64,000 bases of DNA from Caecitellus pseudoparvulus (taxonomy: Eukaryota; Protista; Bigyra: Bicosoecida). Location: positions 620,001 to 684,000 of the forward strand of contig CBFFRQ010000043.1 in NCBI GenBank assembly GCA_965644315.1, written 5' to 3'. This document shows, one piece after another, positions 1 through 39,093 of the stretch (position 1 is the first letter of the stretch; each line of letters begins with the position of its first letter). The notes beneath the pieces were generated by a model that worked only from the letters and a program-made list of their open reading frames with translations, was not told where the DNA came from and did no database searches. A program made the position numbers and the translations under genes.

Positions 1-3000
1 TTGCGCCTTCCCTGCCTTGCGCCGCCGCTTCGTGCCGCTGGCAGGCGTACCACCACTGCCACTGCCACCGGCCGCTGCCTCGCTCAGCACACGGGGATGT
101 GCCTCCCACAGACGCTGCAGGAGGGTGCAGGCGTAGTACGCCGTGTCCCACGGCAGGGCTGCGGCAGCCTTGCGGGCCTGTGCCTGAGCCGCACGCCGCG
201 CAGCCACGGCAGGCGTCACCACACGCCCCCACCTGTCCACATCCCCGTCACCGCTGGCATCACTGTCGTCGCCCTCCAGCTCCCCGCCGCCACCCGCCAC
301 TCCACTCGGCACGGCACGTGCAGTGTCAGGAGCACTGGCTTGCCCCGACCCACTCGCCGCACCCAGCAACGCCAGACTGCTCCCCCCTGCCGCCGCGGCA
401 TCCTCCACGTCACTCCCATCGCTATCACCATCATCCGCCGCTGCGGCGTCCTCCTCCAAGTGCTGGGCGTGCCGCATGGCTGCCGAGGCAGCATCACTCG
501 CCTGCGCCTCCTGCACGCCCTCCGGTTCAGGCGCCAGGGCTGATCCATCACCCCCATCGCCCGATCCCCACCAGTCATGCCCAAACGTCTCCCTCCCTGC
601 AGCAGCCTTCGCCTCGCTCGCCGCCAGCTTGCTCGCGTACACGCCAGCCAGCTCCTCCTCGGCACTGCGCATGGCACGCACAGCACTGGCCACCTCCTCC
701 GCTGCCCGGTTCATAGCCTTGGCCAGACGACGCCCCACCAGCAGCTCAGGACTGCTGGCGCCCGCCAAGCTCAGGGTGTGCAGCCCCACCCGGCGCATGG
801 CTCCACCCGCCTCGCCACCTGCCCACGACGCAGCCATGTCCAGGAGGCTGCCTGCCTGCCCAGGCTCCACGCTCGCCAGCAGGCTCTGCAGCACGGCGCC
901 CACACCAGCACGCACTTGCAGCATGGGCTCCAGACCCAGCCGCTGCACGAGGGCCACGAACATGGGCGCCGCGTGCTCCGCCAGCACCGGCGGCGGAAAC
1001 TGCTTGATGATGGCCAGCAGCATGTCCAGGACTGCCAGCCGCCCCGCCTGCTGGGAGTACGCCAGGTTGGCCAGGAAGAAGTGCATGTACCCTGCCAGGC
1101 GCTTGGCCGACAGCGGGTAGTGCAGGAGGTACGTGAGGAAGACACGCGCACACTGCGCCCGGGTGGCAGGCCGCGTGCCCTGCACCATGAAGTGAGACAC
1201 CGCGTCCATCGTCTCGTACAGCTCAGGTGCCATGAGGCGGCGTGTGACGATGCACCGCAGCAGCTGCAGCGTCGCGCCGGCCCGCTGGGGGTGCTGCAGG
1301 TCTGCCGCCACCAGCACCAGCAGCGCCGACAGCTGGCCCTCGCTGATGGTCGCCCCACGCAGGTGCTTCAGCATGGCCACAGTGGCCCGGGCCGCACACT
1401 GTGCCAAGGCATCCCGCACTGGGCCAGCGGACCGCCCGCCCCCTGCCGTGGACCGCACGTGCCGCAGGATGGCCTTGGAGATGCCCTTGGCGTTGGGCTC
1501 CATGGACGGCAGGGCTGCAGTGTGCGGCAGCAGCAGGGTCAGACCGCGCAGGGCCAGCGTCAGCAGGTCGCTCTGCCGCGTGCTGGTCAGTGTGTGGGCC
1601 AGCAGCGGCACGAAGGGGTCCAGGTCAGGGAGGGTGCCGCCTTCCTCCGCAGGGGCCAGGGACACCACCCGCTTGCGCAGGGACGCCTGCAGCAGGTTCA
1701 GCCCCAGCCACACCAGCTTGCCAGCGGCCAGGGCATTGCCGCCACTGGACCCCACGGACTCGGACAGCCCGTCCCGCGTCCACACGTACCGGCCCGTCCC
1801 CGTCATGCGTGGCTCGGGCGCGATCTTGTGTGTGTCTGTGGGGAAGGCCGTGATGCCCAGTGCTGCGGCAGATGCTGAGCGGGGCGTCGGGGCGCCTGTG
1901 GACGCCTGTGGCGCAGCAGGTGCTGAACCACCCTCCCCACCACCACCATCGCCCTCCTCCTCAAACACCGCCGCCAATCGCGCAGCCGCTGACGAGATGG
2001 CACCAGCGGACATGAGGGCCCCCACTGCGCCATCACCACTGCCCGTCGCCACCATGCCCGCGTTGCCCAGCACTGCACCCATGCTGGCCTCCACCGCCGT
2101 GTACGGGTCGTGCACTGTCCACGCGGCAGCCTGCCCCAGTGTCCGCCGCCGGGCCCGGGCCGCCTTCTCACGGCGCAGGGCGACACTGGCCCTCGCAGCG
2201 GCCAACAGTGCCTGCCTGTCCCCCGACGCGGCCGCCTGCCCCACACTTGCCGCCGCTGCCATGGCCGCCTCTTTGGCCCGCCACCCCTCCCGCACATCTC
2301 GCCCGGCGTGGTGGGCAGCAGCCAGGGCAGCCTCTGTCGCCACGCCAGGCGTCATGAGGTTGTCCCGCACCAGGCAGAACACCAGCATGAGCAGGCCCGG
2401 CGGCGAGGCACGCACTGCCACGTTGGCCAGCAGCCCAGCCACGCCCTGGCTCAGCAGCTCATCCACCGCCCTGCGCACACGGGCCACTGTGCCCTGTGCC
2501 TTCAGGGCCAGCATGGGCGGCGCCAGCAGTGCGTGCACGGCCAGGTGTGGCAGGAAGGGCACCACGCGCGCCAGGAGGCCGTACGTCTCGTAGGAGCGGC
2601 AGGACTTGGCCTCTGCCAGGGCGATCTTGGGCTTGAACCCCGAGTCCACCTGCCGCGCCAGAGCCACCGCGCCCATGACGTCGTTCATGACCATGTCCAG
2701 CAGCAGGGGCAGGGAGGACACCAGGGCGTCGCTGGCGGGGGACAGCTGCTCATCCCCCTCGCCGTCCCCATCCGCGTCTTGGACACCAGGCGTGGGGGGG
2801 TCCAGCTCCCCCCCCTCCACCAGCCCCGCCAGGATGGCGTGCACCGTGTGCCCCAGCACGTGCACCTGGTACCCCTCCTTCAGCGTACTGTGCAGCGCGC
2901 GCAGCGTGTACGGCATGTACTGTGCCCCCAGCTCCTTGGACACCGCCACCAGCGCAGCACGTGTGCGGTCCCGCACCTCCTGCGTCTTGCTCGTCAACAC

Positions 3001-6000
3001 GCCCGTCATGCGGGCCAGCACACTCGGCAGCTCCACGATGAACACACTCTGTGGCAGCGCCTTCAGCAGCTTCACCAGCGCCAGCGCGATGGGTGTGCGC
3101 AGCTGGGCGGTGCGGGGAGCGCTCCGGCGCAGGCGAGCCAGCGCCATGGCACGCCGAGGGTCTGTGCCGCCGGCACCAGCCGCGGTCACGTGTGCGTCCA
3201 GGCCTGTGGCCCGCTTGGCCAGGGGCTGCAGCAGCTCCTTCAGCTTCGGCAGCACACGCACGTACAGGTGCCGTGCCACATCCCCCGCGTCAGGGGTGAA
3301 GGCCGTGCTGCCCCGCCATGACAGCAGCACACCTCGCAGGCGCTGGGCCCAGGTGAGGGGGGCGACAGGCTGGGCGGGGGTCGCCTCCTCGCTTTCACCT
3401 GCACTGGCACCTGCACTGGCACCTGCCGCCTCGCCCTCACCATCCTCCTGCTCCTCTTCCTCGACATCGCTGTCATCGCTTGACTCACCCTCGCCATCCA
3501 CAGCGCGGCGCAAGGCAGCCAGCCCAGGCACACGCGAGGCTGCCTTGCGCCCCGCAGCCTGCAGCCGCCGCGCAGCCCCAGCCGTCATGGCGCCAGCGAT
3601 GACCACCTGCGTGTCGGGCGGCAGCTCCTCAGCCACCTCCCACGGCAGCGCCTCCACCGCCTGCGCCAAGGCATCCATCAGCGCACGCTGCAGAGCGCCG
3701 TCGGCGTCCTGCTCACCGATCAGCCTGGCCAGCCGACGCAGCAGGTCGGTGTAGGCGGGCCACGCCAGGGCAGATGCGGCGGCACCGATGAGCGTCGCGC
3801 CTGCCCGCTGCAGCTCGTGGAAGTGCGCCGTCAGTGTCTTGCCCTTGCGCTTGCCAGGCGCCACAGGGTGGTCGAACAGCGCCTGCAGCGCCAGCGGCAG
3901 GATGATGTGCTGCACTGTGGCGGGGGCCAGCGCACAGTCGGGTGCTGTGATCACGGCGGCCACACGCTTGAAGGCGCGGGCACGGCGGTGCAACTTGATG
4001 TGTGCCAGGCCCGCCAAGGCGTCACGTGTGGCTGGCGTGTGCGGGTGGCCGTCCTGCCCCGACGCACTGGCGCCGCCCAGCACGACGTCACCCTCCTCGT
4101 CACCATCATCAGCATCCTCCTCCTCCGGCTCAGTGGCGGCACCAGCGCCGCCTGCACCGTCACCTGCGCCACCCTGTGATGCCTGCCCACTGCGGCCTGT
4201 GCTGATGGCACACAGCACTGCCGCGTCGGCGTGGAACAGCCTGCCAAGGTCCACGGCAGGCACCGCAGCGCCGCCTGGCCTGCCCAACACCTCCGGACGC
4301 AGGTGCAGGATCGGGCAGTCTGTCGGCAGCAGGGGGCCAGCACACAGCGGCGTCGTCATCCATGCAGCCGCCTCGCCCTGGGCCGACTCGGCCGACACAC
4401 CCACAGCCGCTGCGGCAGGGGCAGCTTCACACGCCCACCCCCGCACCAGCTCCACAAGCGGCGTGCAGGCTGGGAGGGGAGTGTCAGTTGCAGCCTCACA
4501 GTCATGGGCCCATGTCGCGGTGGATGGACCCACCAGCCACGTCACGTCACCCATCATGCCGCGTGGCCACTCGGCCGCCTCCACTGCCAGTGTCCGGAGC
4601 AGGCGCACGACAGTCCGCCGCACAGTGGACGAGGCTGACGCCAGGGACGTGCGCAGAGAGGGCGCCACCACTTCCACCAAGAGCGCCAACGCCCCTGCAG
4701 CGGACCAGCCACGTGCATCATGGCCACGGCCCTCGTCTGCCCGAGCACACAGCGTGAAGAACGGCACCACGGGCAGGCACAGCGGGCACTGGGTGTGCTG
4801 TGCTGCCCACGAGCCGATGCGTCTTGCGAGGTGGCAGATGATGCCGTCCAGCACGGAGCCTGCAGTGGTGGACACTGCCACGTCGTCGTCATGCAGGCAG
4901 GCAGCTACTTGCTGCAGCAAGGCTGGCGCCAGCACAGTCTCGGGCCCTGGCGTGCCCAGGATGGCCGCCATGTGGCCGCCGCGTCCACCCTCCTCCTCAT
5001 CCCCCTCGCCCGGCTGCAGCGTGCGCAGGGCGGCCAGGATCGTGTCAAAGTCAGGTAGGCCCACCCGCTTGGAGGAGCGGGCGTTCAGCTTTTGCAGAGT
5101 CTGCAAGGGGGCCTGGGCTTCGATGCCAGGGAGGGCGCCAATGAGGCGCACGACCTTGCGTCGCGTGTCACCCAGCACTGCGAAGGGCCCTGGCGCGAGG
5201 AGACCAGTCAGGAGGGGCAGGTGCACCTTGGCTGCTGCGGGGGGGATGCTGGGCGCCAGGCGCAAGAGGACATCAAGGAGTGCCGCCCGTGCATCCCGTG
5301 CCGCCACGCCCCCTGCTGCGGAGCCGCCTGCAGCACCCAGCTCGTCGGCGCCACCCTGGGACACGCCGCCTGCCCGGCGCAGGCGCGCCACGTCTCGCTG
5401 GCTGGGGGCCACCTGGGGCAGGAGAAGAGCGAACAGGCGCAGGGTCATGTCCCCGGCCGCCGCCTGGCCGCCGCCCTGTACGACGCTGTCGGCAGCGTGC
5501 ATGACCAGGGCCAGCTCCCGGCGGGCAAAGGCCTTGGCGGCATTGCGTTGGGCGGCCACGGCCTGCCGCCGAGCCCCCACGCCCATCATGGTGGCCTCGT
5601 CCACCCCGTCCACGTTCACAGGCGCGACGCCGGCGACGTCCCCCTCTTGCAGGGACGTCATGATGGACTCTGCCCGGCCTCGAGCGGCGATGCGCACCGT
5701 GAGCGCATGCAGCAGCAGGGGCAGGTGTGCCCGCAGGCTGGCCGGGCCGGAGGGGATGCGGTACTGCGCTGCCGTGGCGGGGTCCATCCCTGTCTCCTGC
5801 TGCACGAGGGGTGTCAGGGCCGTGGTGCCTTCCCCTGCCTGCCCCAGGGCTGCCACAGCGGCGCCCATGTCCACCGCCTCCGTGCCAGCGGGCGGGCCGA
5901 ACGCCAGGCGCATGAGGGCTTCAGCAATGCTGAAGGCGGGGTCCAGGATGGCGGGCGCAGGGGAGGTGCCGGTGATGACAGATGCCACAGTGACACGGCC

Positions 6001-9000
6001 TTGGCTGGGCAGGCCAGGGTGGGTGAAGTCGCCCGCCCCGTGGGTGCCCTGTGCCACACTGGGTCCCCACACGCCCATGCCTGCCGTCAGCGTCTGCAAC
6101 ACCGCAGGCACGGCGCCCGGGAAGATGGCAGGGCTGAGCAGGAGAGGGGCGGTGGCAGGGTGGCTGGACAGGGCGTGCAGCAGGCGCAGCATGTACGGCG
6201 ACCGCTTGCCCTTGCAGGCGTGGAGGGGCAAGTCCGTCACGGCGGGGGCAAAGGTGGGTCCCAGTGCCGCCAGGAAGTGCGGCAGGATGGGGTGTTCTGG
6301 GAAGGCGCGCACGGCATCCGTGAGGCGCTGCAGGCACAGCCCACGCACCTCCTGGGCGCGGGCGTCCACCCCCTCGCTGCGCTTGCGCGCCAGCAAGGCT
6401 GCGTGGTCCTCCTCCTCCTCGTCATCACTTGCTTCGCTGCCAGAGGCCGAGGCACGGTCCTCCTCCGCGTCTGCCGCCTGGGCTGCCAGCACGGCCGTGG
6501 CGTGCTGGTACAGGGCGGCGATGGGGGCCAGCAGCAGGTGCAGGTGTCCATGCACTGCACGGCCCATCTGCTTGAGGATGTGCTGCGCCATGTGCAGGAA
6601 GCCGATGGCGCGGGGGGCGGGCACTGCGCCTGCCACGGCCCCAAAGAGGTCCACGCAGGCCTGGGCCTGGGCAGCGTCTGTCGGGACTTGCGGAGCGAAG
6701 GGGATGTGCTTGGACCCGGGGAGGAACTCCTGCGCGTACGCCTGCGCCAGGGCCGCGTCCACGGCGTTGGTGGGCGCAAAGCCAAAGTCTGCGGGCATGT
6801 CTGCCACGTCGGCGTCCTCGGGCATGAGCACGGTGAAGGAGCGGAGGGTCAAGTACACCATGGCGGACAGCTCCCGCGGCGCCAGCCCGGCGAGGTAGGA
6901 CAGGATGGCGGCCCGGCGGGCGTACTGCGCGGTGCGTCCCCCCCCTCCCTGGCGCTGCATGATGCGCCCGAAGAGGATGCGGATGAGGGTGGGGATGAGG
7001 GCACGCCGGTGCTCGGTGCCGATGCCGCCGGCGCCTGGCGCCAGGGAGAACCGCGTCAGCTCTGTGCGGAAGGACGCCTCTGTGACCAGGGCAGTCATGG
7101 ATGCCTTGTACGGCACGATGTGGGACGGGCCAAAGGCGAGGAGCAGGCTCAAGCCAGCCTTGGCCAGGCCGCCCTGGGGCTTGCTCAGCAGGCGCACGGC
7201 CAGCTGCTGCAGGGTGTCGGCAGCGGGCACGTGGGCCCACGAGTGCACCTTGGCGAACATGCGGACGAAGTTGGCCAAGCGGTGGGTGGTGTCGCGGGCA
7301 GGCATGGGCAGGGTGGGGGCGCCATCGGCAGCCCGGGGGTCCACCTGGGCGCCTTGGTCCGGCGGCACATCGAGAATGGCAGACAACACCACAGCGCCGC
7401 TGGCAGCCTGGGGCAGGGGACTGCTGTCCACAATGCCGCCGTGGCGGGCGGGGAGTGCGCCCGCGGGGGCGTCTGCCGCCAGTCGCCGCAAGGCACTGGG
7501 CAAGCGCAGCTCAATGGCGTCTGGATCATTGCGCCCAGCGCCAGCGTAGTAATCCCGCATCGTGCTGCCGAGAGCCAGGGCCACCAGGGGCAGGGCATGC
7601 TTGCGCAGGAAGCGCTGCGCCTGCCCCAGCAGCTGAGTGAGGCCTGCGTGCAGGGTGCCTGCATCCACGTGCCCCGCGGCGCCCAGCGCCAAGACCTGCT
7701 CCCGGGCCACGCTGGCCATGAGGAGGCGGCCAGAGGTCCACCGGCCCTCCCGCGCGGCATTCAGGTCCCCCACCTGGTTGGCCACGCTGGGCATGAGGGA
7801 CGCCGCGCCCACGGTGCCGTACACCGCCCCCAACACGAAGCGAGTGTGCAGGCGCGTCTGCTGGGGGGACTCCCGCAGACCCGCCGACCCAGCCAGCGCA
7901 GACACCAGGCGGCCAGCCACCAGCGCGGCGGCGTCCGTGCCGCTCTCCTCGGCTTGGACTGCCAGCGTCTGCGGTGCTGCCAGCACGGCGCCGTCCGTGC
8001 CGTCCAGCAACACGTGCAGCAAGGCAGCGTGGGACAGGTCCACGCTGGGGCGGGCGCAGGTGGCATGCAGGACGGCCCGTGCCAGCAACGGCCAGGCCAG
8101 GGGCTTGACGTGGTGCAGCGCCAGGCCTAGCAGCGCCTGTGCGGCGGTGTACAGGGGCTTGAAGCGAGCGTGCAGCGCGCCCAGCGCCGCGCCCACCACG
8201 GCGGCGCCCTCTGCATCCTCCAGCACGCCGGCAGCCAGCATGCGGCCCCAGCGCTGCAGGCCTAGCGTCAGGGGGCGCTCAGTGAGCAGGGTCTTGGGCA
8301 TGAGCTCCAGCTGGAAGGCCTTGAGCAGCACGTTGCAGGGCCCTGAGAAGGCTGCCAGCACGGTGCCCTCGTCTGCGCCATCCTCGTCGCTGTCGGAGGA
8401 AGAGGAGGCTTCGCTGTCGCTCGCACCATCGCCACCTGCGTCGGCCGCACCTGTGCTCGCGGCTTTGGCGGCTGAGCGAGGCGTGAAGGGCGCGCTGTGG
8501 AATTGGCACAGCAGCTGCAGGGTGAGCAGGCGTGTGCTGCGCTCGGGAGAGGCGAGGGCCACGAGAGCCCACCTGCCCAGGACTTGCCGCAAGGCGTCCC
8601 GGCCCAGCGCCCCGTGCAGTCGCCGCAAGGTGCCATCTGCTGCCAGGACGGGGGCCACGTCGTGAGTCAGCGCCGCTGCTGCGTTGGCTGCCTTTGCGAA
8701 GAGGAAGGCGGACCGCAGAGCCGCGACGCCCAAGCCCCCTGCCAGCAGGCGCTGGCGCATGAAGGCGGCGGTGAAGTGGCTGCCGGCCTCCTCAGCGCCT
8801 GGCCCCGCCACATCGGGTGTGTCGGACAGGCGCCAGGCGCTGTACCAGAGCGCCTGGTGTGTGGCGACGTCCCCGGCCCACTGCAGGGCGAGTGAGATGT
8901 CTGCATCTCCCAGGGCCTGCACGCCCGGAGGGGGGCTCGTCTTTGGCTCAGGGGGGGTCCCGAACGCCATGAGGGCGGTGTCGGCGCTGGCTGGCGCGCC

Positions 9001-12000
9001 ACAGGTAGACAACGTGACGCTTGCAGCGAGGGCCAGCGCCGCTGCCGTCAAGCGCTGGCCCACCACACCCTCGTCAGACAGCATCGCGCGCGTGGGGCCG
9101 CTCCCGCCCAGCGCCGGCATCCAGTCGCCCCCAGCCTTGGCCTTGCGTAGCAGAGCGCGAGCCAGGGCCACTACGGCGGGCAGCACTGCCTCCCCCTCCA
9201 GGTGCAGCGCGCACAGCGCCTCCAGGGCCACACTTGCCTCGGCGAGCTGGGACAGGGTGCCAGTGGGCAGAAGCGCCTGCACCGCCCCCACGATGGCCAG
9301 CGCGACCTGTGTGCCTGACACACCCTGCACGTCTTCGGGGCTAGGCGCCTTGCCGGCGGACATGGCTGGGGCGCTGGCTGTCGCCTCCCGAGGGCGCTTG
9401 CGGGACTGCCGGGCGCGCTGGGACGCTAGTACTGCTGCGTGCCACGCACGGGGTTGCTCCTTGGCGCGCTTGGCGGGGGTGGCGGCCTTGCCCTTGCGGC
9501 GTGGCTTGGCGGCGGTGTCCTGGGCGACGGCACCAGGCTGGCCCGGCGCCGACGCCAGCAGCATGAGGCGTCCCGTGGGCCCCACGCACTTGCCCAGGGC
9601 TGGTGCGAGGTCGTCCAGGGCAGTTCGAGCAGCGCCCGTGGCGGCATCCACCTCCGGCAGAGCCCTGGCCGTCACCTCTGTCGCGCCGTTGAGGGCGTCC
9701 CACATGGCGTGCAGGCTGCTGACGAGGGGCGCGGCGCAGAGCAGGACGGCAGAGGGCGCTGTCGCCGCTGTCGTGGCACTCGCCATGGGCTGCAGGATGG
9801 CCATGCAGCCAGGGATGAGGCTGGCGATGAGCTCCGCGCGCGCAGGCACGGCACGCAGGGCGGCTCGCCCCGCACGCCCCTCGCAGTCCCCCACCGCCAT
9901 CACCAGCGCATCACGGCAGAACGCCAGCTGCAGTGCGGTGAGGGCCAGGGGTGCGGGGGCGCCGGTGCCGGCCGTGGAGGCGGAGGGTGCCGCCGTCCCC
10001 GAGGTGATGAGGGCCAGCGGACCCGCCGCGCCATCTTCCTGCCCACCAGAGACACCTTCACTGTGCTGGCACTGCACCAGCCTTGCAGCGTTGAGCATGG
10101 CTGCGCCGAGGGCGGTGGCCTCAGCTGCAGTGGGAACGCACTGGGTGGTGGTGTGCCCCAGGGACTGGGAGTGGGGCTGCACGCCATCCACGCCCTCCGT
10201 CGAGGCGGTGGCAGTGAACACGCCCCTCACCAGGGCAGTCAGCCCCTCCAGGCGCTTGGCCAGCGCACCGTCGTCTGTGAGGCTGCCTTCCTCGCCGCCG
10301 CCCTCCTCCTCCTCCTCCTCGCTGGCGTGGCCTGGTGCACCTCTGCCCCCCTCCTTCACCTCCTCCTCTTCCTCAGCTGCCGCTGCCTCGGCGGCTCGGC
10401 GGGCCAGCATGGCTGCCACCTTGCCCTGCCGCCTGCGCTTGCCGACGCCACGGGCCAGGCAGACCTTCCAGACGTTGATGAGCAGCATGAGGCCGGCGGC
10501 ACGGGCAAAGCCAGAGCAGAGGCGGTGGCCCAGCACGGCAGGGTCCAGCACTCGCCGCAGGGTGGACATGAGGCGCCCAGGCTCCCCCGTGTCCAGCGTG
10601 AAGCGCCAGCAACTGGCGGCGTGCCAGCGTGTCAAGCAGGCCAGCACGCGGGCAATGTGCAGCGACAGCGAGGCGGCCAGGGCGGCGTCTTGCGTACTGC
10701 GGGCCGGCTCTGGGGCAGCGTGCCCCTCGCCCACCGCGTCTGTGCTGCGTGGGCGCTTGGAAGGGGGGGGCACCCCCGCTGCGGCGGCCCATGCGCCCAT
10801 GGCCGCCCGCACCTCCCCGTGCAGCACCTTCAGCACTGTGCCGGCAGCGTCGTTGCTCAGGCCTCGCTGCAGGGACGTCAGCGTCATCTGCAGCACCTGC
10901 ATGCGGCGCACCAGCTTCGCGTCGGAAGCCTGGGACACCTGCACAGCGTCGGCGGCCTGGGAAGTGGAGGCTGGTAGCGGGCTAGCAGCGGCCTTAGGGC
11001 GGCACGTCTTTAGCGCAGCAGCCAGCAAGTCTGGCGCACGGGAGTGCAGGCCTTGCTGCACGCCCTGCAGCAGTTGCAGGAGCAGGGCGGACATGCCCTG
11101 CTTGAGGTCGTGGGGGCGGTCGCCGGGCTGGTCTGGGAAGGCGCCACGCTGCCAAGGCTGGGCGGCATCTGGCAGGGCGACAGCCCCGAGGCCGGCCCCC
11201 TCCTCGTCTGAAGCAGTACCCATGCTGCGCAAGAGGCCACAGGCGTGCTTGACCATGGCTTTGCTCTCCAGGCGCCGCAGGAGGTACGCGAAAGACTGAG
11301 CGCCAAAGTCACGAATGTACTCCCGAGGGTGTGCCAAGACTGGGCCGTACAGCTCCTTCAACCCTTCGACATCGGCAAGGAGCGGCTGCGAGAGGTACTT
11401 GAACAAGTATGCCAGGGTCTTGAACACCTCTGCCGTGAGCTCGGGCTGTGCAGGGGCAGGGAAAGGGCGGTATGGGAGAGTGTCTGCGGAAATCGACTCC
11501 AGTTTCCGCAGCCTGGCCAGCGCCAGTGCCACCGCCTCGCACGCACAATGGAGGGGTTCAAGATGTCCATTAGGACAAGAAAAATAGACCTAAAGTCTTC
11601 GTACAGTTCTTGGCGCAAGTCCCTGTGCAAAACGTCGAGAAAGCGACGTGCACGCGGCGCTGGCGAAAGAGCAGGAACGAACAGAAGCTCACGCACCGGC
11701 CCAGCACCGTGAGGAGGTGCAGCAGGGACTTCCACGCCATGGTGCGCTCCTTGCGCAAGTGGCGCATGAAGGCGTCCACGATCTTGCGCTTGTGCAGCAG
11801 CAGCAAGGGCATGGTGCGGGAGAGTGGGTACACTTCCCGAGCAAAGTCGCCGTAGTCCCGGCTGCCGTCGATGTCCAGCAGCGTCGTGAGCTCCCCGGAG
11901 AAGAAGCACGCATGCTCGCCACCAGCCTTGGGCGCTGCACCCAGCTCGTGGCTGTCCTTCACCTGGCGCCCGATGGCCACATCCTGCGCGGCAGCTCGCT

Positions 12001-25314: not shown

Positions 25315-28300
25315 TCACTGGTGCACGCCGGTGTGCCGGACAGTGGGCGGCTGCAGCGGCATTTCCAGGGCCAGGGCGGTGAGGTCAGGCACCGTGAGGC
25401 GGGGTGAGAAGGCGGGCACCTCGTCAAAGGCGGGGCAGTAGTCCAGCGGCAAGTCCTGCAAGTGCCCCGTGCCGGAGGGCTGGGCTGAGTAGTGCAGTGT
25501 GTTCACGAGGCGGGCCGGCACGACGCCTGCCTCGGTTGCGGAGCTTTGGATGCGGGCGGCCGTGGCGGCTTGTTTGGCGGCGAAATCAATGCAGGCAGTG
25601 GACGCCACGACACGCAGCAGACGTGTGCGGGGCGACGGCCCCTCGCGCCCCGTTGTCAGTCGCACGCGGCGCTCGTGCACGCGACCCCGCAGTCGGCGCT
25701 GTGTCGCGTGCAGGTGAGACGCCTCCTCCTTGTCCCCCAGCCGAGCACAGAGACTGGCCAGCTGGGCTGTCACCTCCACCTCCGCCTCGATGAGCCCTGT
25801 TGCCTGCAGGATGCTGAGGGCGGAGTTCAGGCAGCGGCGGGCGCCGTGCAGGTTCTGCACCTTGGCGTGCACTTCTGCCAGCGCAGCCCACGCAAGCGCC
25901 TCGCCATGCCGCGACCCGGCGCCCCGGAACAGCGAACGGGCAGCGGCAAGGTGCATCTTCGCAGAGCTCAGCCGCCCCTTTGCCGCGCTGCCTGTGCCGT
26001 TGCCGGCGAAGGACAGGGCGATGCCCAGCGCCTTGTGGCAGCAGGCGGCGCCGAAGCGGAAACGAATGCCGTAGGCGGGCGGGCCGGCAGGCGCAGGCGG
26101 CGGGGAGGCATCTGTCGCGCTGGCAGCGCCCTTGAACTTCTCAGTGGGGCTCGTGCACAGGGACAGGCCCAAGTTCGCCGCCTGCAGCGCCGCTTCGTGC
26201 CGCCCGTGCAGCAGCAACGCACCTGCCATGCTCGCGGCCATCATCACGCACTGCTTCAACGCATGCTTGCACGCCAGCACAAAGGCAGAGGGCAGGAAGT
26301 GCGCCCTGCCGACAGCAGGCATGGCTGGGCTGGCATGGCCATCGTCCCCCTCGCTGTCCGAGTCGCCTTCGTCAGCTGTGCTGCAAGTGGTGTCCAGGAG
26401 CGGCGTCAGCGCCGGCGTGCCTGCAGCTGAAGCGTCCACGCCCTCTGGAGTCACCAGCGCCAGCCCGCCGCCCTCCCGGAACTGCAAACTGCCGCCGTTT
26501 CGAGACGCTTCGTCCAAGGCACACACTGCCAGCAGTTCCCGCCGTGCGTGCAGCAGGTGGCTGTGCATGCTGGGCCAGTAGGTGTCGGTGACGAGAAACG
26601 CCGCTGCCGACGCCGCACTGCCAGCTGCACTGTCAATGAAGGCGAAGCAGAACTGGGACACTGCTCGCCAGTGCAGGGTTGCTCGCAGGAGCAGGGCAGC
26701 CCGCAGGCACTGTGGGCGGGACAGCGCTGACGGCACGCCAGCGGGTGTGATGGTGGTGCGCTGCCGGGCTTTGGCCAGGGTCGTGAACGCCGCATACACC
26801 GACGGCGGCGGACGGGGGTCCAGTGCTGCCGGCTTGCTCGCTGGTGGGGGGCGCTCTGGGGCCTCTGCCGTGCCTGGGCTGACGGGCGGCGCAGCAGGTG
26901 GGCGCGCAGACCCGCTGCCACCCCCCGTGCGGGAGCGGGTGGAGGCGGTGCTGCTCGGCGCAAGGCTGGGACGGGCGGTGGGCCCACTGCCACTGCTGTC
27001 CCGCCGTGCCGCCGCACGTTGGGCAGAGTGCCGACCAGGGGAGGGCGGGTGCCTGGGCCCACTGCCGGCACCCCCCCCTCCCGTGCCAGCAGAGGGGGGG
27101 GTGGAGCTCGCGATGGGGCGGCGTCCAGGCGTGCCTGGGGCTGAGCGCCCCCCCGCCCCTGGCCGCCGATGGGGGCCCAGCGCCCCCCCCTTGCCCACTC
27201 CTCGCAGGGCGCCCCCCACCACGGACATGCGGGGCCGCGGGATGCGGCTGACGAAGCTGGTGGGCCCACCCTCCGCATCCTCCGCACCCCGCTTGCCCTT
27301 GCCCATGCCCCCCCACCGTGCCCCGCCACTGGACTCCCGGCTCAGCAGGGGAGGGGCCGCCGCCCCACGTGGGGGCAGGGACTCCACACTGGGCGAGCTG
27401 AAGGCACTGGTGGGACGGGTGGAGGGTGGGGGCGTGACAGGGGCGCCTGCGGGGGGGGACCCCGCCCCCCCCTCCACCCTGGATGTGGCCACGCTGGCGG
27501 TGTCCGCAGTGAGGGTGAGGGGGGGGGGTGGCGGCGAGGACCCCTCCCTCCCCCCTGCCGTGCTGGGCACACGCAGCATGCGGGTGGTGGGGGGCACCAG
27601 GGAGCTCAGCGGGAGGGGCGTGTCCACCGCCACCCCCCCCAGCAGGGACGTGAGGGGGGGTGCCAGGCTCCCCCGTGCATACTCCACCACGTACGGGAAG
27701 GTGCTGTACCAGCGCAGAGACACCTTGCTGGCGGCCCGCAGGTTGGTGGCCACTGCTTGCAGGTGGGCGGGGGCGGTGCCCACCGCCACAGAGTGAGGGG
27801 ACGCCGCCCACGCCAAGATGCCCGCAGCATCCAGGGGCTCCCCTGCCCCCCCTGGGGAGGACGCGGGGGGGGGTCCCGGCAGCCGCAGCTCCCCCCCCCC
27901 GCCACCCCCCTGTGTGGAGAATGTGAAGAGGCTGCTGCCACCCCCCCAGGACAGGAAGGAGAGGGCCGAGTGGCGGCTGGAGGCAACAGAGGGCGCCGCG
28001 CCCCCCCGTCCACCCTCCTCCTCCCCCACCACGGCCGAGAACAAGCCCTCGTTGCCCTCTGCAGGGGGGCTGCTCCCGGACATGGGGGGGGGTGCCGAGG
28101 CCGGTCCGCCCAGGTGGGCCAGCGTCAGCCAGGCGTGCAGAATGGCCATGGCGAGGGGGGCGTCATCCGCCGCACTGCCAGCGGGGGTGGTCGCCGCCGC
28201 TGCGGGGTGTGACGCCACGCCCCTGCGTTCCAGAACACTCCACTGCACCAGCACATCCGCCATGCCCCGCCAGTCCACCCCGGGGGGGGACGGCAGGGGG

Positions 28301-31300
28301 GGTGGCATGGCCTGCAGGCCCCCCCCCGACTCAGCCCGGTGCATGTCAGGGGGGGACAGGGAGGCGAGCCGGTTCACACCGGATCCGACCCCCCCTCGGG
28401 CGGGGGCGGTGTCCCCCCCTCCTTCCAGCGCTGCCGCCCCTGCTGGGCCGCCCTCCAGCAGCGACTCTGTCACCGCTGACAGCACGTGCACAGAGGCACG
28501 GGGGCGCACGCCCCCCCCCTCCCCTCCTGCTCCCAGCTGACGCATGCCCACCCACCCACGACCTCCCCCCACCCCAGGCCCTGCCCGTCCAGCCGCCCGA
28601 GACACGGCCTTCACCCGCCGCCGCTTGACTCGGTGGTGCCGGGAGGTGCTGCCCCAGGGGTTGACGTTGTCCTGGGCCCACCACGGCATGCCCGCCCCAG
28701 GCGCAGACCCCGCCGCCAGGGCACGTGGTCGCACGACGGCGGACATGGAGCCCCCCCCATGTAGCATGAGGCCACCTCGACTGCCCCGCAGGGGGGTGGG
28801 CTTGCCGCCTGGAGGGGGGGTGGTGGAGGTGGGCCCACCCCCCCCCATGATGCCCCCTGGAGGGGGGGTGGCGGACGAGAATATGGACAGGGAGGTGAGA
28901 GCGGACCCGGTGCTGCCGACGGACGTCGCATGCGACAGGCCCGTGCGATCACTCGCCATAGACGAGCCAGACGCCACTGACACGGCGTCCGTCACATCTG
29001 GCGCGCGAGTCGGGAGGTGTGCCCCCCCCGCACCGCCACTCGCAGCAGCGGACCCGGCGGCCGCGGTGTCCGGCCGCGGCGCCAGCTCCCCCAGCGCGCC
29101 TGCGAAGGGCAGGGCCTCGACGATCCACAGGAAGTCGCCGTCGTGCAGGCCGCGGGGGTACAGTCCCATGAGCAGCAGCAGCACGAGAGCCTGGGGGTGC
29201 TGCCGTGCCAGGGCCGTGACGCTGGCCCGCAGGGAGCCTGCCAGGGACAGGTGGGGACTGGCCTCCGCCCCGGGCGGCTGGGGCAGGGGGGTGCCGTCCC
29301 CGGACAGCCCCCCCAGCATGTGGGGCATGCTGTGCGGCGTGAGGGCCATGGCCCCCCGTGTGTGCAGGAAGTGGGCCACGTCGGACAGGGAGCGGTCCAG
29401 GAGCAGGGCGGCAGCCAGGGAGATGGCGTGGGGGTGGCCATTCAAGTACTTGAGCACGGGGTGGCGGCCGAGGGCCGAGAGGGCGCGCTGCTTGCGGGAG
29501 GAGCGGGGGTCCCCCACGGGGGGGGTGGCGGGGGGGGTGGCTTCGCCCCCCTCGCCCCCCCCCTCACCCCCCCAGATCTCCCCTGCCGTCAGACTGCGGG
29601 GGGAGCGGCGGGCCAACAGCTCCGCCGCCTCTGTCGCGTGCAGGGCCTTGAGGGACACCACTGACTCCCGGGCGTGGGAGGGGTTGCCCCACAGGGTGCT
29701 GAGGAGGCCGTCCCCGACCACGGCGCGACGTGAGGTCGTGAGCAGGCACACTCCCGGACACGCCCCCAGCAGGCTGCCCAGCACCAGCCGCGTCGCACCT
29801 GCGTCCTCGTTCAAGGCGTCCTCCAAGTTGTCCAGCACAAGGCAGACGCGAGGGGGGGTGCAGCCCCCCCCCTCTCCCCCCAACAGACCCAGCACTGTCC
29901 CCCACGCCGGCAGGTGAAAGGCGGCAGGGGCATCTTCCGGCACGGCGGTGGAGCGGGAGGGGGAGGTGGTGGTGGAGGTGGGTGGGCCCTCCTCCTCCGC
30001 CCCCGTGGGCCCACCCTCCGCCTGCCCCGCCCCATGGCGCCGCGCATACCGCTGGCCCTGCGTCAAGGCACGCCCCAGGCGCTGCACCAGCCCCACGGCG
30101 GAATCCACGCCCCGCAGTGCCACCACCACCACGCCATCCGCCACCGCCTCCATGATGTGGCTGCGCTGCAGCAGGAAGTGCGCCACTGACACCACCGCCG
30201 TCGTCTTGCCGATGCCGGGAAACCCCCGAACCGTCACGAGGCGGCAGGCGCCTTGCGTCAGCAGGCGCACAATGTGGTAGATTTCCCGCCGTCGCCCCAC
30301 CAGGATGTCAGGCGGTGCTGGCAACCACATAAAGGACGGCGCGTGCCCGGAGCAGTCAGCCAGACTGCCTGCTGGCGTGGTGGCGGGCGGAAACGGCGGC
30401 AACGCCTCCGGCCGCGGTCGCGCGCCGAGAATGCTGCTTTCTTGGGCCAGCAGCACAAACTTCTCCGCCTCCCCACGGCCCTTCTCCACGTCCACGCGGG
30501 AGGTGGCGATCTGGAACGCCGTCGGGACGCTGTGCCCCGTGAACAGCGCGTGGTAAAACCCACGCGCGAACAGCAACGACGACGCGTCGAGGACCTTGCT
30601 GCCCCGCCCCACGGCGATGACATACTGCGCGCCACAGGACAGAAAGGCCTGTCCCACCACCACGGACTGGCAGGCAGACACGAACACCACCTGCACGGCC
30701 GAACCAGGCCGGCAACGCAGGATGCTGTGCAGCTGTGGCAGAGTCAACATCTGCGCCGACCCGTCGGCGCCCTCCAGCACGATGTACTGCACACCCTGTG
30801 CATCACGGCCGCCGTGTCCTGAGAAGTGCAGCACGCGGGTGCCTTGCTGCGAAAGGGAGGGGGGGGCGTGACGCGCGTGAAGCACGCGTTGTGGTTCCTG
30901 CGCAGCGCACACGCACCACCCAAGTGTGCTGCAGGGTGTCCGCCGTCGCGGGCAAAACGGCCACGCGAAGCGCCCGTGTGGAATCCCGAATGCTCTTCAG
31001 AATCAGCCGTCGCTCCGTCGCCAGCTCCAGGGGGGCCACAGGCACAGCCTGCAGAGGGGGTGCTGCGGAATTTGCAGCCTGGCCAGACCCGGCGCTTCCC
31101 CCCCTCAACATGACCAGAGGAGACGCCTGCAGCACCGCTACGTCGATGCTGCCTTGCTGGTCACCGTTTCCTTGCTTGGGGCTTGGAACTGGCGCGCTGC
31201 CATCACTTCCCGCCTCTGCAGGCGCCGCAACGGCAGCTTCCTCTGCTTTCCGCACGTCGCTTTCTGTGCCCTTACTCGCAGCCAACAAGCCCCGCGCCTG

Positions 31301-31396
31301 AGCTTGCAGCTTCGCCAGCGTCGCCTCGGCACTCTCCCCCTCCGACCCTGCGCTGGCCAACGCTTGCAGGAGCGCCGACAGCTCGCCAGCCGCCAT
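25315..31396 (-). CDS. CHAT (caspase-like) protease - NB-ARC-type STAND ATPase - TPR protein, about 2003 aa
   Basis: Exons 31396-30917 and 30846-25315. CHAT His motif VLHFSGHG and Cys motif VFVSACQS; Walker A GFPGIGKT, Walker B LVLDNLE, TTSRR, GHPHAISLAA; C-terminal TPR-like helices (AARSLFRGAGSRHGEALAWAALAEV). Confidence 0.85.
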
Positions 31397-31604: not shown

Positions 31605-32495
31605 ATGCGGAAGTGGGCGCTGGTGCTGCTGCTGGCCTGCGCGTCGTTGTGGACACATGCCTCAGCCAGCGGCCCCTTGCCGGACAACATCGCCATGCTC
31701 ATGAAGTGCACCGCCTGTGAGCGCGTCGTGGAGTACCTGAATCAGCACTTTATCTCCGGCGTGCGTCGCTGGCGACCACAGTCCGTCACGCACCTGCCCC
31801 CCACGCCGCCCCCCCGCACCCACACTGCACTTCAGTGGATCCAAAAGGACGTCAAGTGGAGCAAGAAGATGAAGGGCACTTTCAAACGCGTCGTGGCTGA
31901 GAACTCCTGTGCCAACCCAGTGCGTGGGCAGGTCCTGCAGCGCTGGCCAGCCACGTGGACTGCCTCACACCGTCAACCCTATCTTCCTGCACCCGCAGGA
32001 GGTGTTCCCCGGGAACAATGACATGTACCGCTCGGGGTGTGTGGATTTCATCAAGAACCATCGCAAGGAGGTGCGCCCCTCCCCCCGCGCCGCACCGCAC
32101 CCAACCGCCTCATCACACCCGAGAACTCCCCCACCCGCCCAGCTGGAACGAGGCGTGGCGCGCCGCCTGTCGCCCAAGTCGGAGTACTACCAGGTCAGGC
32201 CACGCCGCCACGCAGTGTCGGTGCGTCGCGGGCCAGACACGCCCCATCCCCGCCTCACCCACAGGAGGACCTGACCCCCAAGGAGTTCTGCCAAGAGATC
32301 CACGCCTGCCCCCATGAGATGCGGGGGCTAGAGCACCAGATGCAGGACGTGCAGCGCAAGCACGCGTGGGAGTCAGCTGAGGAACGAGAGGCAGCTGTGC
32401 CAGCCAGCCGTGCAGACCCCACCCGTGTCATTGGAGGCAAGGACGCCGCAGACAGCGCCGTTGTGGAGGACGACGACGAGGCGCTGGAGCTGTAG
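31605..32495 (+). CDS. Secretory saposin-B-like (canopy-like) protein
   Basis: Exons 31605-31760, 31836-31919, 31999-32070, 32143-32193, 32265-32495. Signal peptide, six Cys in a saposin pattern (CTAC..C..C..FCQEIHAC) and C-terminal ALEL. Confidence 0.72.
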
Positions 32496-38012: not shown

Positions 38013-39093
38013 ATGGCTCAGCCGTACCTGACCGCCATCAACCTGATGGGATGGATTGACAGCATTAAGGACGAGCTGCAGCCGCCTGTCGGGAACAAGC
38101 TCATGTTCGGTGCTGGGCAGCAGAAGGTCATGGTGGTGGGCGGCCCCAACAAGCGCTCCGACTACCACATCGAGGAGGGCGAGGTGAGCAATCTCCGCAG
38201 GCTGAGGTGCAGGTGATGCGCCGCACCTTCCACGCCCCCCGCCGCCGCAGGAGCTGTTCTACATGCTGAAGGGCAACATGACCCTGAATGTCATGGAGGC
38301 TGGCAAGCCCCGCAGCATCCCAATCAAGGAGGGGGAGGTGTTTCTCCTGCCAGCGCGCGTGCCTCATTCTCCCCAGCGTGAAGCAGACACCATTGGCCTG
38401 GTGCTGGAGCGAGAGCGCCTGGCCACCGAGCAAGATGGATTGCGGTGGTACGTGCCAGGCACCAGCGACATCTTGTTCGAAGACTGGTTCCACTGCACCG
38501 ACTTGGGCAAGCAGCTGAAGCCCATCATCGAAGCCTTCCACGCCTCCGAAGCACACGCGACGGGCGTGCCAGCCCGCGACTACTCCGCGACACAGCCGCC
38601 CGTCGAGGTGGACGATGAGATCAAGATTGGCCATGCTGTGCCCCTACACACCTGGATGGCCCGATATGCCTCCAGCGGCTACGCCTACTTGACGGGGGAC
38701 GACGAGGTGCCGGGTGGGCACTTGAACGGCGACGCTCAGGGCGTTGCCTCCCACGAGAGCGGCTGCCTGAGCCCAGGTGGCGAGTACACCACCATCGTTG
38801 CCCGGGCCGGTGCAGCTGAGGAGTGGGTGACGTACCCAGGGGAGGTCTTCATCTGGTGCCAGCACGGCGCCTGCACTGTTTCCGTGCAGGCGCCAGAGGC
38901 AGGGGACGCCTCCGACCACGCCCTTGCCGAAGGCGAGGTCATGCTTGTTCCTGCTGGGCACAGCGTGAAGACTGTGTGGACTGACGTGGGCGACTCCCTT
39001 GCCGCGGGGTGGATCGTCTCGAACAGGAAGGTGCCCGAGTCAGCGGCGACGCAGCCCGCTGCTGCTGCCACAGCTGCATCCAGCGAGCACTGA
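38013..39093 (+). CDS. HAAO: 3-hydroxyanthranilate 3,4-dioxygenase
   Basis: Exons 38013-38183 and 38251-39093. LQPPVGNK, VGGPNKRSDYHIEEGEELFY, FLLPARVPHSPQR, DGLRWY, FHCTDLGKQL. Confidence 0.96.

Follow-up and report, generated by a model that had tools for sequence, protein, structure and literature searches.

Does the genome of the bicosoecid protist Caecitellus pseudoparvulus encode a genuine receptor-protease, in which a CHAT protease, a STAND ATPase and an array of tetratricopeptide repeats (TPRs) are joined in a single chain, and what might such a protein do? The question is raised by a gene on the minus strand (25315-31396) of a 64,000-nucleotide stretch of this genome (assembly GCA_965644315.1, contig CBFFRQ010000043.1, positions 620,001 to 684,000), which we refer to as the window and whose numbering is used unless another contig is named. 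An original prediction, made from the letters of the DNA, had described a spliced gene of about 2003 amino acids (aa) and had read it as a ligand-activated protease for innate immunity or regulated death in a microbial eukaryote. We find that the gene is real and encodes all three domains, and we think it rather probable that its product is a single-chain cytosolic machine made up of a sensor, an ATP switch and a protease.

Results

A spliced gene encodes a CHAT protease, a STAND ATPase and a TPR sensor

The gene has two exons, of 160 and 1843 codons, which together give exactly the 2003 aa that had been claimed (Table 1). In particular, the exon-2 frame is open for 1865 codons (30912-25315), whereas an upstream frame that begins with an ATG runs for 197 codons (31396-30803) and, if read unspliced, stops at 30803; the two frames can be joined in phase only when the 70 nucleotides (nt) from 30916 to 30847 are removed. 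This segment has a GTGCGT donor at one end and a polypyrimidine tract and CAG acceptor at the other. Residues 1-77 of exon 1 form a helical and low-complexity leader, and residues 78-160 constitute the N-terminal half of the CHAT domain. The motifs named in the original prediction are all in place: HFSGHG (30828-30811), SACQS (30678-30664), GFPGIGKT (30225-30202), LVLDNLED (starting near 29841), TTSRR (near 29739-29725) and GHPHAI (29439-29422). (Each exon was scanned, searched and folded separately.)

The CHAT family model, Pfam PF12770, matches exon-2 residues 1-169 (30340-30846, minus strand) over profile positions 142-264, scoring 35.5 bits (E 9.5e-9) where the cut-off is 24, and in a six-frame scan of the genome it scores this gene at 36.1 bits. 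Note that a Pfam scan of the whole open reading frame (ORF) missed the domain, returning only Peptidase_C14 at E 0.12, and that a domain-sized piece recovered it. The motifs predict a catalytic His (30816-30814, in HFSGHG; exon-2 His11) and Cys (30672-30670, in SACQS; exon-2 Cys59). Neither varies among relatives (alignment A3), and both are aligned with the HFIGHG and NAC motifs of PDB 8tl0, a CHAT domain-containing protein and the sole solved sequence match to the exon-2 CHAT half. The rest of the domain lies in exon 1. On a family profile of 914 positions, built from 20 intron-free relatives, exon 1 residues 78-157 match positions 12-77 (E 1.3e-11) and exon 2 begins at position 82; three closing residues of exon 1 plus the opening residue of exon 2 account exactly for the four positions left over, and the halves from both exons are colinear on this one profile. 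Moreover, homologs align to exon 1 at 5 residues upstream of the point at which the exon-2 alignment starts. The CHAT assignment, with its catalytic His and Cys, is therefore borne out by profile search as well as by motif, and the intact dyad predicts a peptidase.

The central part of the protein matches AAA_16 (37.5 bits, cut-off 32.6), and the NACHT family (PF05729) falls below its cut-off (25.1 bits against 26.7). Its motifs are a Walker A (GFPGIGKT), a Walker B (LVLDNLED), a sensor-1 (TTSRR) and GHPHAI at the GLPL position, and GxPGIGKT, LDNxED and TSR are invariant or nearly so across 29 relatives. An AlphaFold2 model of exon-2 residues 170-600, made from a 29-row alignment, has a predicted local distance difference test score (pLDDT) of 78.7 and a predicted template modeling score (pTM) of 0.75. 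The top Foldseek matches of this model are the wheat resistosome, Apaf-1, CED-4 and NRC3, with ZAR1 also among them and with no NACHT chain among the entries shown. VIA-align gives Z 15.6 for Apaf-1 over 277 residues, residues 1-420 of the model lying on Apaf-1 113-414 (the nucleotide-binding domain, helical domain 1 and winged-helix domain), and Z 15.3 and 15.0 for CED-4 and NRC4, respectively. (A search of solved structures by sequence returned only RFC and Clp P-loop matches for the ATPase, which are uninformative.) Judged from the model, the module is a STAND NTPase with the AP-ATPases as its nearest solved folds. The STAND fold expected at the outset is thus recovered, both as an AAA_16 match above cut-off and as an Apaf-1-like model; the narrower label NB-ARC holds as a resemblance of fold, to Apaf-1, CED-4 and the plant NLRs, but not by Pfam, in which PF00931 finds no match.

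A similar split applies to the C-terminal TPR-like repeats of the original prediction, which hold by fold but not by Pfam thresholds. All Pfam TPR models stayed below their cut-offs (TPR_12 at 21.8 against 30.1, TPR_MalT at 22.3 against 45 and TPR_14 at 20.8 against 23.5), and NCBIfam gave a weak TPR match only. Positions 707-819 of the family profile match residues 1618-1741 at E 7e-15, residues 180-392 of the C-terminal model have a pLDDT of 85-97, and Foldseek places the model with LGN/Pins, KLC, designed CTPR and NASP (E 7e-5, probability 1.0).

Table 1. Features of the CHAT-STAND-TPR gene in window coordinates.
Feature	Position	Strand	Basis
Exon 1 (160 aa)	30917..31396	-	ATG frame; ortholog exon 1 44% identical
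Intron, 70 nt, phase 0	30847..30916	-	Sequence; ortholog intron at identical codon position
Exon-2 start, C-terminal half of CHAT protease	30442..30846	-	Pfam PF12770; invariant dyad
Predicted STAND nucleotide-binding module (nucleotide-binding domain, helical domain, start of winged helix)	29122..30321	-	AAA_16; AlphaFold2 model; motifs
Insertion 1 (~265 aa, Gly/Pro/Ser/Ala-rich), inside winged helix	28312..29109	-	Family profile jumps; in frame in ortholog
Island 1, helix of winged helix, GVDWRGMADVLVQWSVLER, exon-2 residues 846-875	28222..28311	-	BLASTP to P0021 516-544, E 1e-4, colinear; conserved in ortholog
Insertion 2 (~165 aa)	27724..28221	-	Islands 172 residues apart here, 8 in P0021
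Island 2, end of winged helix, WYSTFPYVVEYA, residues 1047-1058	27661..27723	-	Profile 550-570 matches exon-2 residues 1042-1062
Insertion 3 (~290 aa), between winged helix and sensor region	26797..27660	-	Composition; ortholog identity profile; synonymous strain differences at residues 1235-1323
Helical linker and TPR sensor, ~3-5 TPR-like hairpins	25627..26718	-	Family profile; fold; best-modeled part 25651-26289
C-terminal tail (~100 aa, predicted disordered) and stop codon (25317-25315)	25315..25626	-	Translation; pLDDT <50; 34-44% identity to ortholog

The gene is resident and under purifying selection

An ortholog, P0001 (1927 aa), lies on a 17.9-kb Joint Genome Institute metagenome contig (L001) and is 60% identical over the first 560 residues of exon 2; an ORF upstream of it on L001 corresponds to exon 1. 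The two are separated by an intron of 72 nt (GTAAGT...CAG, L001:5917-5988), and the spliced junction reads LQRVWM/EGARVLHF in the ortholog and LQHTWV/QGTRVLHF here. Because the ortholog intron interrupts exactly the same codon position, the donor in the window is fixed between 30917 and 30916. Gene order is conserved as well, the 3-hydroxyanthranilate 3,4-dioxygenase (3-HAO) gene at 38263-39078 (plus strand) being the sole genome match of the 3-HAO encoded on L001. (A further ORF downstream on L001, 14116-15612, has no match in the genome that contains the window.)

The 3-HAO proteins are 53% identical and provide both a marker of synteny and a baseline of divergence. By comparison, the CHAT-NOD part (that is, the protease and the nucleotide-binding and oligomerization domain) is 60-67% identical to the ortholog, the TPR part 44-62% and the whole of exon 2 49%. 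The CHAT-ATPase portion is therefore at least as conserved as the neighboring 3-HAO, and although a baseline of one gene is only indicative, it gives no sign of accelerated evolution. With respect to conservation the gene comes close to the single-copy, slowly evolving ortholog that the original prediction had named as evidence against itself.

Synonymous sites are saturated in the comparison with the ortholog (49% aa identity). A closer comparison is provided by a 98%-identical strain, whose contigs (run X3) cover the whole gene. Of 37 differences from this strain, taken from the best-supported 40 of roughly 145, 32 are synonymous and 5 nonsynonymous, low-complexity parts included. At the level of sequence, this pattern shows that the gene is under purifying selection. 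A 4-nt deletion at 30857, the only X3 indel listed apart from presumed misalignments in low-complexity sequence, falls inside the intron. Diversification of the TPR region, which had been proposed as a check, is not what we find, given both these strain differences and the identity of the TPR part to the ortholog relative to that of 3-HAO.

Because the position and phase of the intron and the order of the genes are conserved in the ortholog, and because the gene falls in a eukaryote-only clade (see below), we take it to be resident and eukaryotic and not contamination, as the original prediction had argued from the intron. The microbial-eukaryote host it had supposed agrees with the spliceosomal introns, with the seawater runs and with the nearest named relatives, which are protists of the stramenopile-alveolate-Rhizaria (SAR) group. 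The genome of this marine protist, of about 30 Mb, is rich in G+C and poor in introns.

We also considered that the frame might be an artefact or a decayed gene, that is, a by-product of high G+C content, non-coding or intronic low-complexity sequence, a wrong merger or a bacterial contaminant. G+C runs at 66-76% across the gene, other frames contain ORFs of up to 457 aa, the contigs examined offer no RNA support, and prokaryotic homologs exist at 27-37% identity. Even so, from the base composition (~72% G+C) we estimate the chance of a stop-free run of 1865 codons at about e^-31, which places the frame far beyond chance despite the high G+C. Moreover, an ortholog only 49% identical keeps this 5.5-kb frame open, strain differences are biased to third codon positions throughout (residues 653-1327 included), conserved islands within the low-complexity region are colinear with the family profile, the position of the spliceosomal intron is conserved, and the named eukaryotes sit in one clade apart from prokaryotes. 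An artefact is thus already contradicted by the present sequence data, and we consider it hardly credible.

Two observations on composition and assembly may be added. The low-complexity core of the gene has 74-76% G+C against 63-66% in its flanks, and on the ortholog contig the flanking genes (1-6000) have about 55% against 65-67% inside the CHAT-STAND gene (6001-12000), so that in both species the gene is richer in G+C than its surroundings. Run X3 contains many extra short contigs, as well as odd joints at 27450-28423 and 29887-30009, one of which returns from 28423 to 27450 by way of 40 foreign letters; the genome of that strain probably has similar Gly/Pro-rich coding repeats at other sites. 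Joints in this run (for example 27470 to 28403) were considered as introns and rejected, their sides of 20-21 letters lying within low-complexity repeats, and were treated as misalignments.

Low-complexity insertions split the winged helix

The original prediction had described one Gly/Pro/Ser-rich insertion of about 900 aa. Low-complexity sequence is indeed present, exon-2 residues ~580-1350 being 50-70% Gly, Pro, Ser or Ala, but it forms three insertions with two islands between them and not one block. What remains of the winged helix after its start is recognizable only as these two islands past the insertions, the second of which matches P0021 553-568 by BLASTP at E 0.009. At the MHD position the sequence is YSTFPY, the family consensus being YSTFPF, and we infer that island 2 is the family counterpart of the NB-ARC MHD site. 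In compact relatives the spacing from NOD to TPR is ~190-330 aa, compared with ~1030 aa here.

In insertion 1 the strain differences are synonymous, and between residues 653 and 1327 the X3 strain has 15 synonymous differences out of 18. The insertions lie in a frame that both species keep open, the islands between them are conserved and the strain differences are mostly synonymous; we therefore take the insertions to be translated and selectively constrained. Two metagenomic fragments, P0005 (334 aa) and P0006 (873 aa), resemble exon-2 residues 5-310 (61% identity) and 327-1144 (67% identity), respectively, and would seem to represent one or more additional related species that likewise have the low-complexity insertions. 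The one unusual feature of the gene is this splitting of the winged-helix switch by large low-complexity insertions that selection maintains.

Relatives form separate eukaryotic and prokaryotic groups

A HMMER search with a 582-residue CHAT-NOD piece returned 3039 cluster representatives at E<=1e-3, 563 at E<=1e-10 and 24 at E<=1e-30, many of them colinear with the query protein across CHAT, P-loop, NOD and TPR. The named close relatives are from Bigelowiella natans and Platysulcus tardus (EukProt models), Saprolegnia diclina (XP_008619241.1), Aphanomyces stellatus (KAF0698105.1) and Euplotes crassus (CAI2359291.1), and the named protist proteins are annotated only as hypothetical or AAA+ proteins. 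They share the family and the order of domains, with 38-43% identity over the CHAT-P-loop stretches found by phmmer and 29-38% over the ATPase module alone, but they do not have the three large low-complexity insertions. (A full-text search, incomplete in coverage, found no paper describing a protist CHAT-STAND-TPR clade.)

Prokaryotic relatives, from metagenome-assembled genomes, come from Thermoflexales, Anaerolinea, Thermoanaerobaculia (HXU31953.1), Holophagales, Desulfobacteraceae, Cloacimonetes and Methanothrix; a 7-row alignment was used for the search for related loci in prokaryotes. These proteins are colinear over residues 2-574 and have the same motifs, at 27-37% identity by tblastn and 35-40% in protein alignments, but they are compact (~860-1140 aa) and intron-free.

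Two quick maximum-likelihood trees place the 8 eukaryote-labeled rows (6 named protists, the gene studied here and its ortholog) within one clade of 28 rows, and 9 named prokaryotes, including members of Chloroflexota, Acidobacteriota and Methanothrix, lie across that branch, which has a support of 99 in the Shimodaira-Hasegawa-like approximate likelihood-ratio test (SH-aLRT). Within the eukaryotic clade the gene and its ortholog group with stramenopiles in a sub-clade whose support is weaker (93). Because the trees are unrooted and carry SH-aLRT support only, and because most rows are unlabeled metagenomic proteins, our claim is confined to the separation of the eukaryotic and prokaryotic groups in these sequences and extends to neither the direction nor the number of transfers. 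(One row, L021, was dropped for a branch 6.7 long.) The phylogeny called for in the original prediction hence sets the eukaryotic clade apart from prokaryotes, in a comparison of protist, prokaryotic and unlabeled metagenomic proteins.

The family is small in this genome and has no evident partner

Searches of the 30.6-Mb genome with Pfam CHAT, with the protein itself and with a NOD profile together yield three CHAT-STAND loci, and thus an expanded receptor repertoire, for which a count of paralogs had been proposed, is not found. One paralog, at C56:330479-~340373 (minus strand), has a frame of 3298 codons. Weak LRR and Arm matches come first in it, and its C-terminal 600 residues contain CHAT (40 bits), AAA_16 and a marginal NB-ARC. 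Across CHAT, linker and P-loop this paralog shares 30% identity with the gene in the window, with HLCCHA replacing HFSGHG. The other, at C18:~251044-253308 (plus strand), has an AAA_16 match of 33.3 bits and ends in an SH2 domain (29.3 bits, cut-off 21), its frame extending beyond the examined locus. Judging by these matches, the CHAT-NOD cassette has been combined with TPR, LRR and SH2 modules within a single small genome.

The search for gasdermin substrates that had been suggested was negative, PF04598 having no match at E<=0.1 in a six-frame scan of the genome, a scan that divergent gasdermins could escape. Likewise, none of the PADLOC-DB defense models matched the CHAT-NOD or the TPR part at E<=0.01, and no housekeeping partner or pathway is evident nearby.

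Upstream, at 31605-32018 (plus strand), is a divergent neighbor that starts with a signal-peptide-like leader, MRKWALVLLLACASL; on the ortholog contig, a small ORF (L001:4824-5234, minus strand) occupies the corresponding position and orientation. We entertained the idea that this neighbor, for which a saposin-like label had been considered, might be a pore-forming substrate of the protease, and rejected it: no Pfam family matches the first ORF here or in the ortholog, so the label is unconfirmed, and the leader would place the product topologically apart from a cytosolic protease.

Discussion

How does this protein compare with receptor-proteases that have been characterized? CHAT-bearing NLRs and TPR-CHAT proteases serve as protease-carrying receptors in fungi and bacteria (PMC10197012, PMC12881547), and the placement of a CHAT effector within a repeat-bearing receptor has been called a "contracted" pyroptosis-like pathway (PMC10197012, PMC12881547, PMC8851545). 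In the fungal CHAT-NLRs, and in the Podospora TPR-CHAT protease that cleaves a gasdermin, the CHAT effector is likewise fused to a repeat receptor, but fungal CHAT genes adjoin gasdermin genes, whereas the gene described here has unrelated neighbors in a genome in which no gasdermin was found. The CHAT proteases of CRISPR systems (TPR-CHAT/Csx29 of Craspase, and SAVED-CHAT) provide a second point of comparison: an inactive CHAT is switched on by a sensor and TPR occurs together with CHAT, but target RNA or cyclic oligoadenylate is the trigger, acting through other partners, and these systems are not known to have a STAND ATPase.

The best structural matches of the ATPase, however, are to the Apaf-1/caspase-9 and CED-4/CED-3 systems, whose logic, a nucleotide switch that turns on a caspase-fold protease by proximity, the protein described here would share. 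Apaf-1, CED-4 and the gene described here are all conserved and low in copy number. They differ in that the protease of Apaf-1 and CED-4 is a separate protein engaged through a CARD and the sensor is either WD40 (Apaf-1) or absent (CED-4), whereas the protein described here carries its protease as an N-terminal fusion, uses TPR as its sensor and gives no match to Pfam NB-ARC. Plant, animal and fungal NLR repertoires, by contrast, are expanded and diversifying. Given its low copy number, its synteny and its good conservation, the gene described here would seem to be better likened to a fixed "apoptosome in one chain" than to one receptor of a diversifying repertoire.

For the single-chain machine that we favor, ligand gating, oligomerization, activation by proximity and the cellular outcome are modeled on Apaf-1 and CED-4, on plant resistosomes and on the CHAT proteases of fungi and bacteria. 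In the resting state, the TPR array and the winged helix would lock the Apaf-1-type nucleotide-binding module in a closed form. Once a conserved ligand had bound the TPR region, nucleotides would be exchanged and the ATPase modules would oligomerize, which would cluster the N-terminal CHAT domains and so switch on proteolysis of substrates. The most likely output would be regulated cell death, or else a stress or defense programme.

Several observations weigh against such a machine. PF00931 has no match at E<=1 in the protein scans, and a genome-wide scan with it misses the gene; ORC/Cdc6 and TnsC come within 1 Z unit of Apaf-1 in the structural comparison, but over a shorter range that takes in the AAA+ core only. 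The winged helix is interrupted by ~430 aa of low-complexity sequence, and the evidence for CHAT comes from two halves taken separately and not from one modeled fold. No substrate candidate was found, gasdermin having been searched for genome-wide. Finally, two seawater runs that are nominally "metatranscriptomic" contain short contigs, 97-98% identical, over some stretches of the gene (low-complexity sequence among them), but these contigs bear a flag as probable DNA, none crosses the intron, and none of the runs listed is recorded as RNA.

Might the protein instead be what the original prediction proposed, an innate immune receptor that senses pathogens such as giant viruses and triggers abortive death, in the manner of plant and animal NLRs or bacterial Avs? 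What stands of that proposal is the effector-STAND-repeat architecture with its intact motifs, and fungal CHAT-NLRs and the CHAT proteases of bacterial gasdermin systems do act in defense and cell death. A conserved TPR region could recognize a conserved viral protein, as Avs proteins do, and the pairing of one CHAT-NOD cassette with three sensor modules in the genome would also suit a set of receptors. What finds no support is the immune role as such, antiviral or other: the family has only three members in 30.6 Mb, the ortholog is one-to-one and syntenic with a degree of conservation near or above that of 3-HAO, strain differences are 32:5 in favor of synonymous change, and the PADLOC and gasdermin searches were negative. 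We therefore think an immune receptor unlikely. A regulatory protease without a role in death, that is, a scaffold that processes specific substrates in development, the cell cycle or stress adaptation as HetF (in the differentiation of cyanobacterial heterocysts) or separase do, would fit the conservation, the low copy number and the synteny, as well as the coupling of the CHAT-NOD cassette to an SH2 signaling module in a paralog; indeed, the CHAT family takes its name from the developmental protease HetF and has separase among its relations (PMC12881547). Set against this are the lack of any evident housekeeping partner or pathway nearby and the fact that characterized fusions of STAND with a protease are overwhelmingly conflict or death systems (PMC7159879, PMC8195603), and such a regulator strikes us as rather improbable.

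The architecture of CHAT, NOD and repeats has been known for two decades from comparative genomics of bacteria and fungi, and the present finding extends this biology and does not overturn it; judged from the sequences collected here, it belongs to a large and little-studied family that spans protists, bacteria and archaea.

Programmed cell death matters in the ecology of marine protists, for example in the collapse of blooms and in the dynamics of viruses and hosts. These organisms are not known to have canonical caspases or Apaf-1, suspicion usually falls on metacaspases, and to our knowledge the molecular initiators of this death have not been identified. A more speculative idea, and one to which we would give only a slender chance, is that CHAT-STAND-TPR proteins are the initiators of caspase-like death in SAR and marine protists, in response to a conserved ligand of endogenous or viral origin. 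The insertions would then add a level of control particular to the lineage, setting the threshold of activation by such means as phosphorylation or condensation. The gene and its clade, which includes proteins of oomycetes, Platysulcus, Bigelowiella and Euplotes, nevertheless offer a concrete and testable candidate for death initiation, one that would couple a caspase-fold protease directly to an Apaf-1-like ATP switch and a putative ligand-binding TPR array. Moreover, the clade is the eukaryotic arm of a family that also occurs in anaerobic bacteria and Methanothrix, and it bears on the prokaryotic origins of the machinery of cell death.

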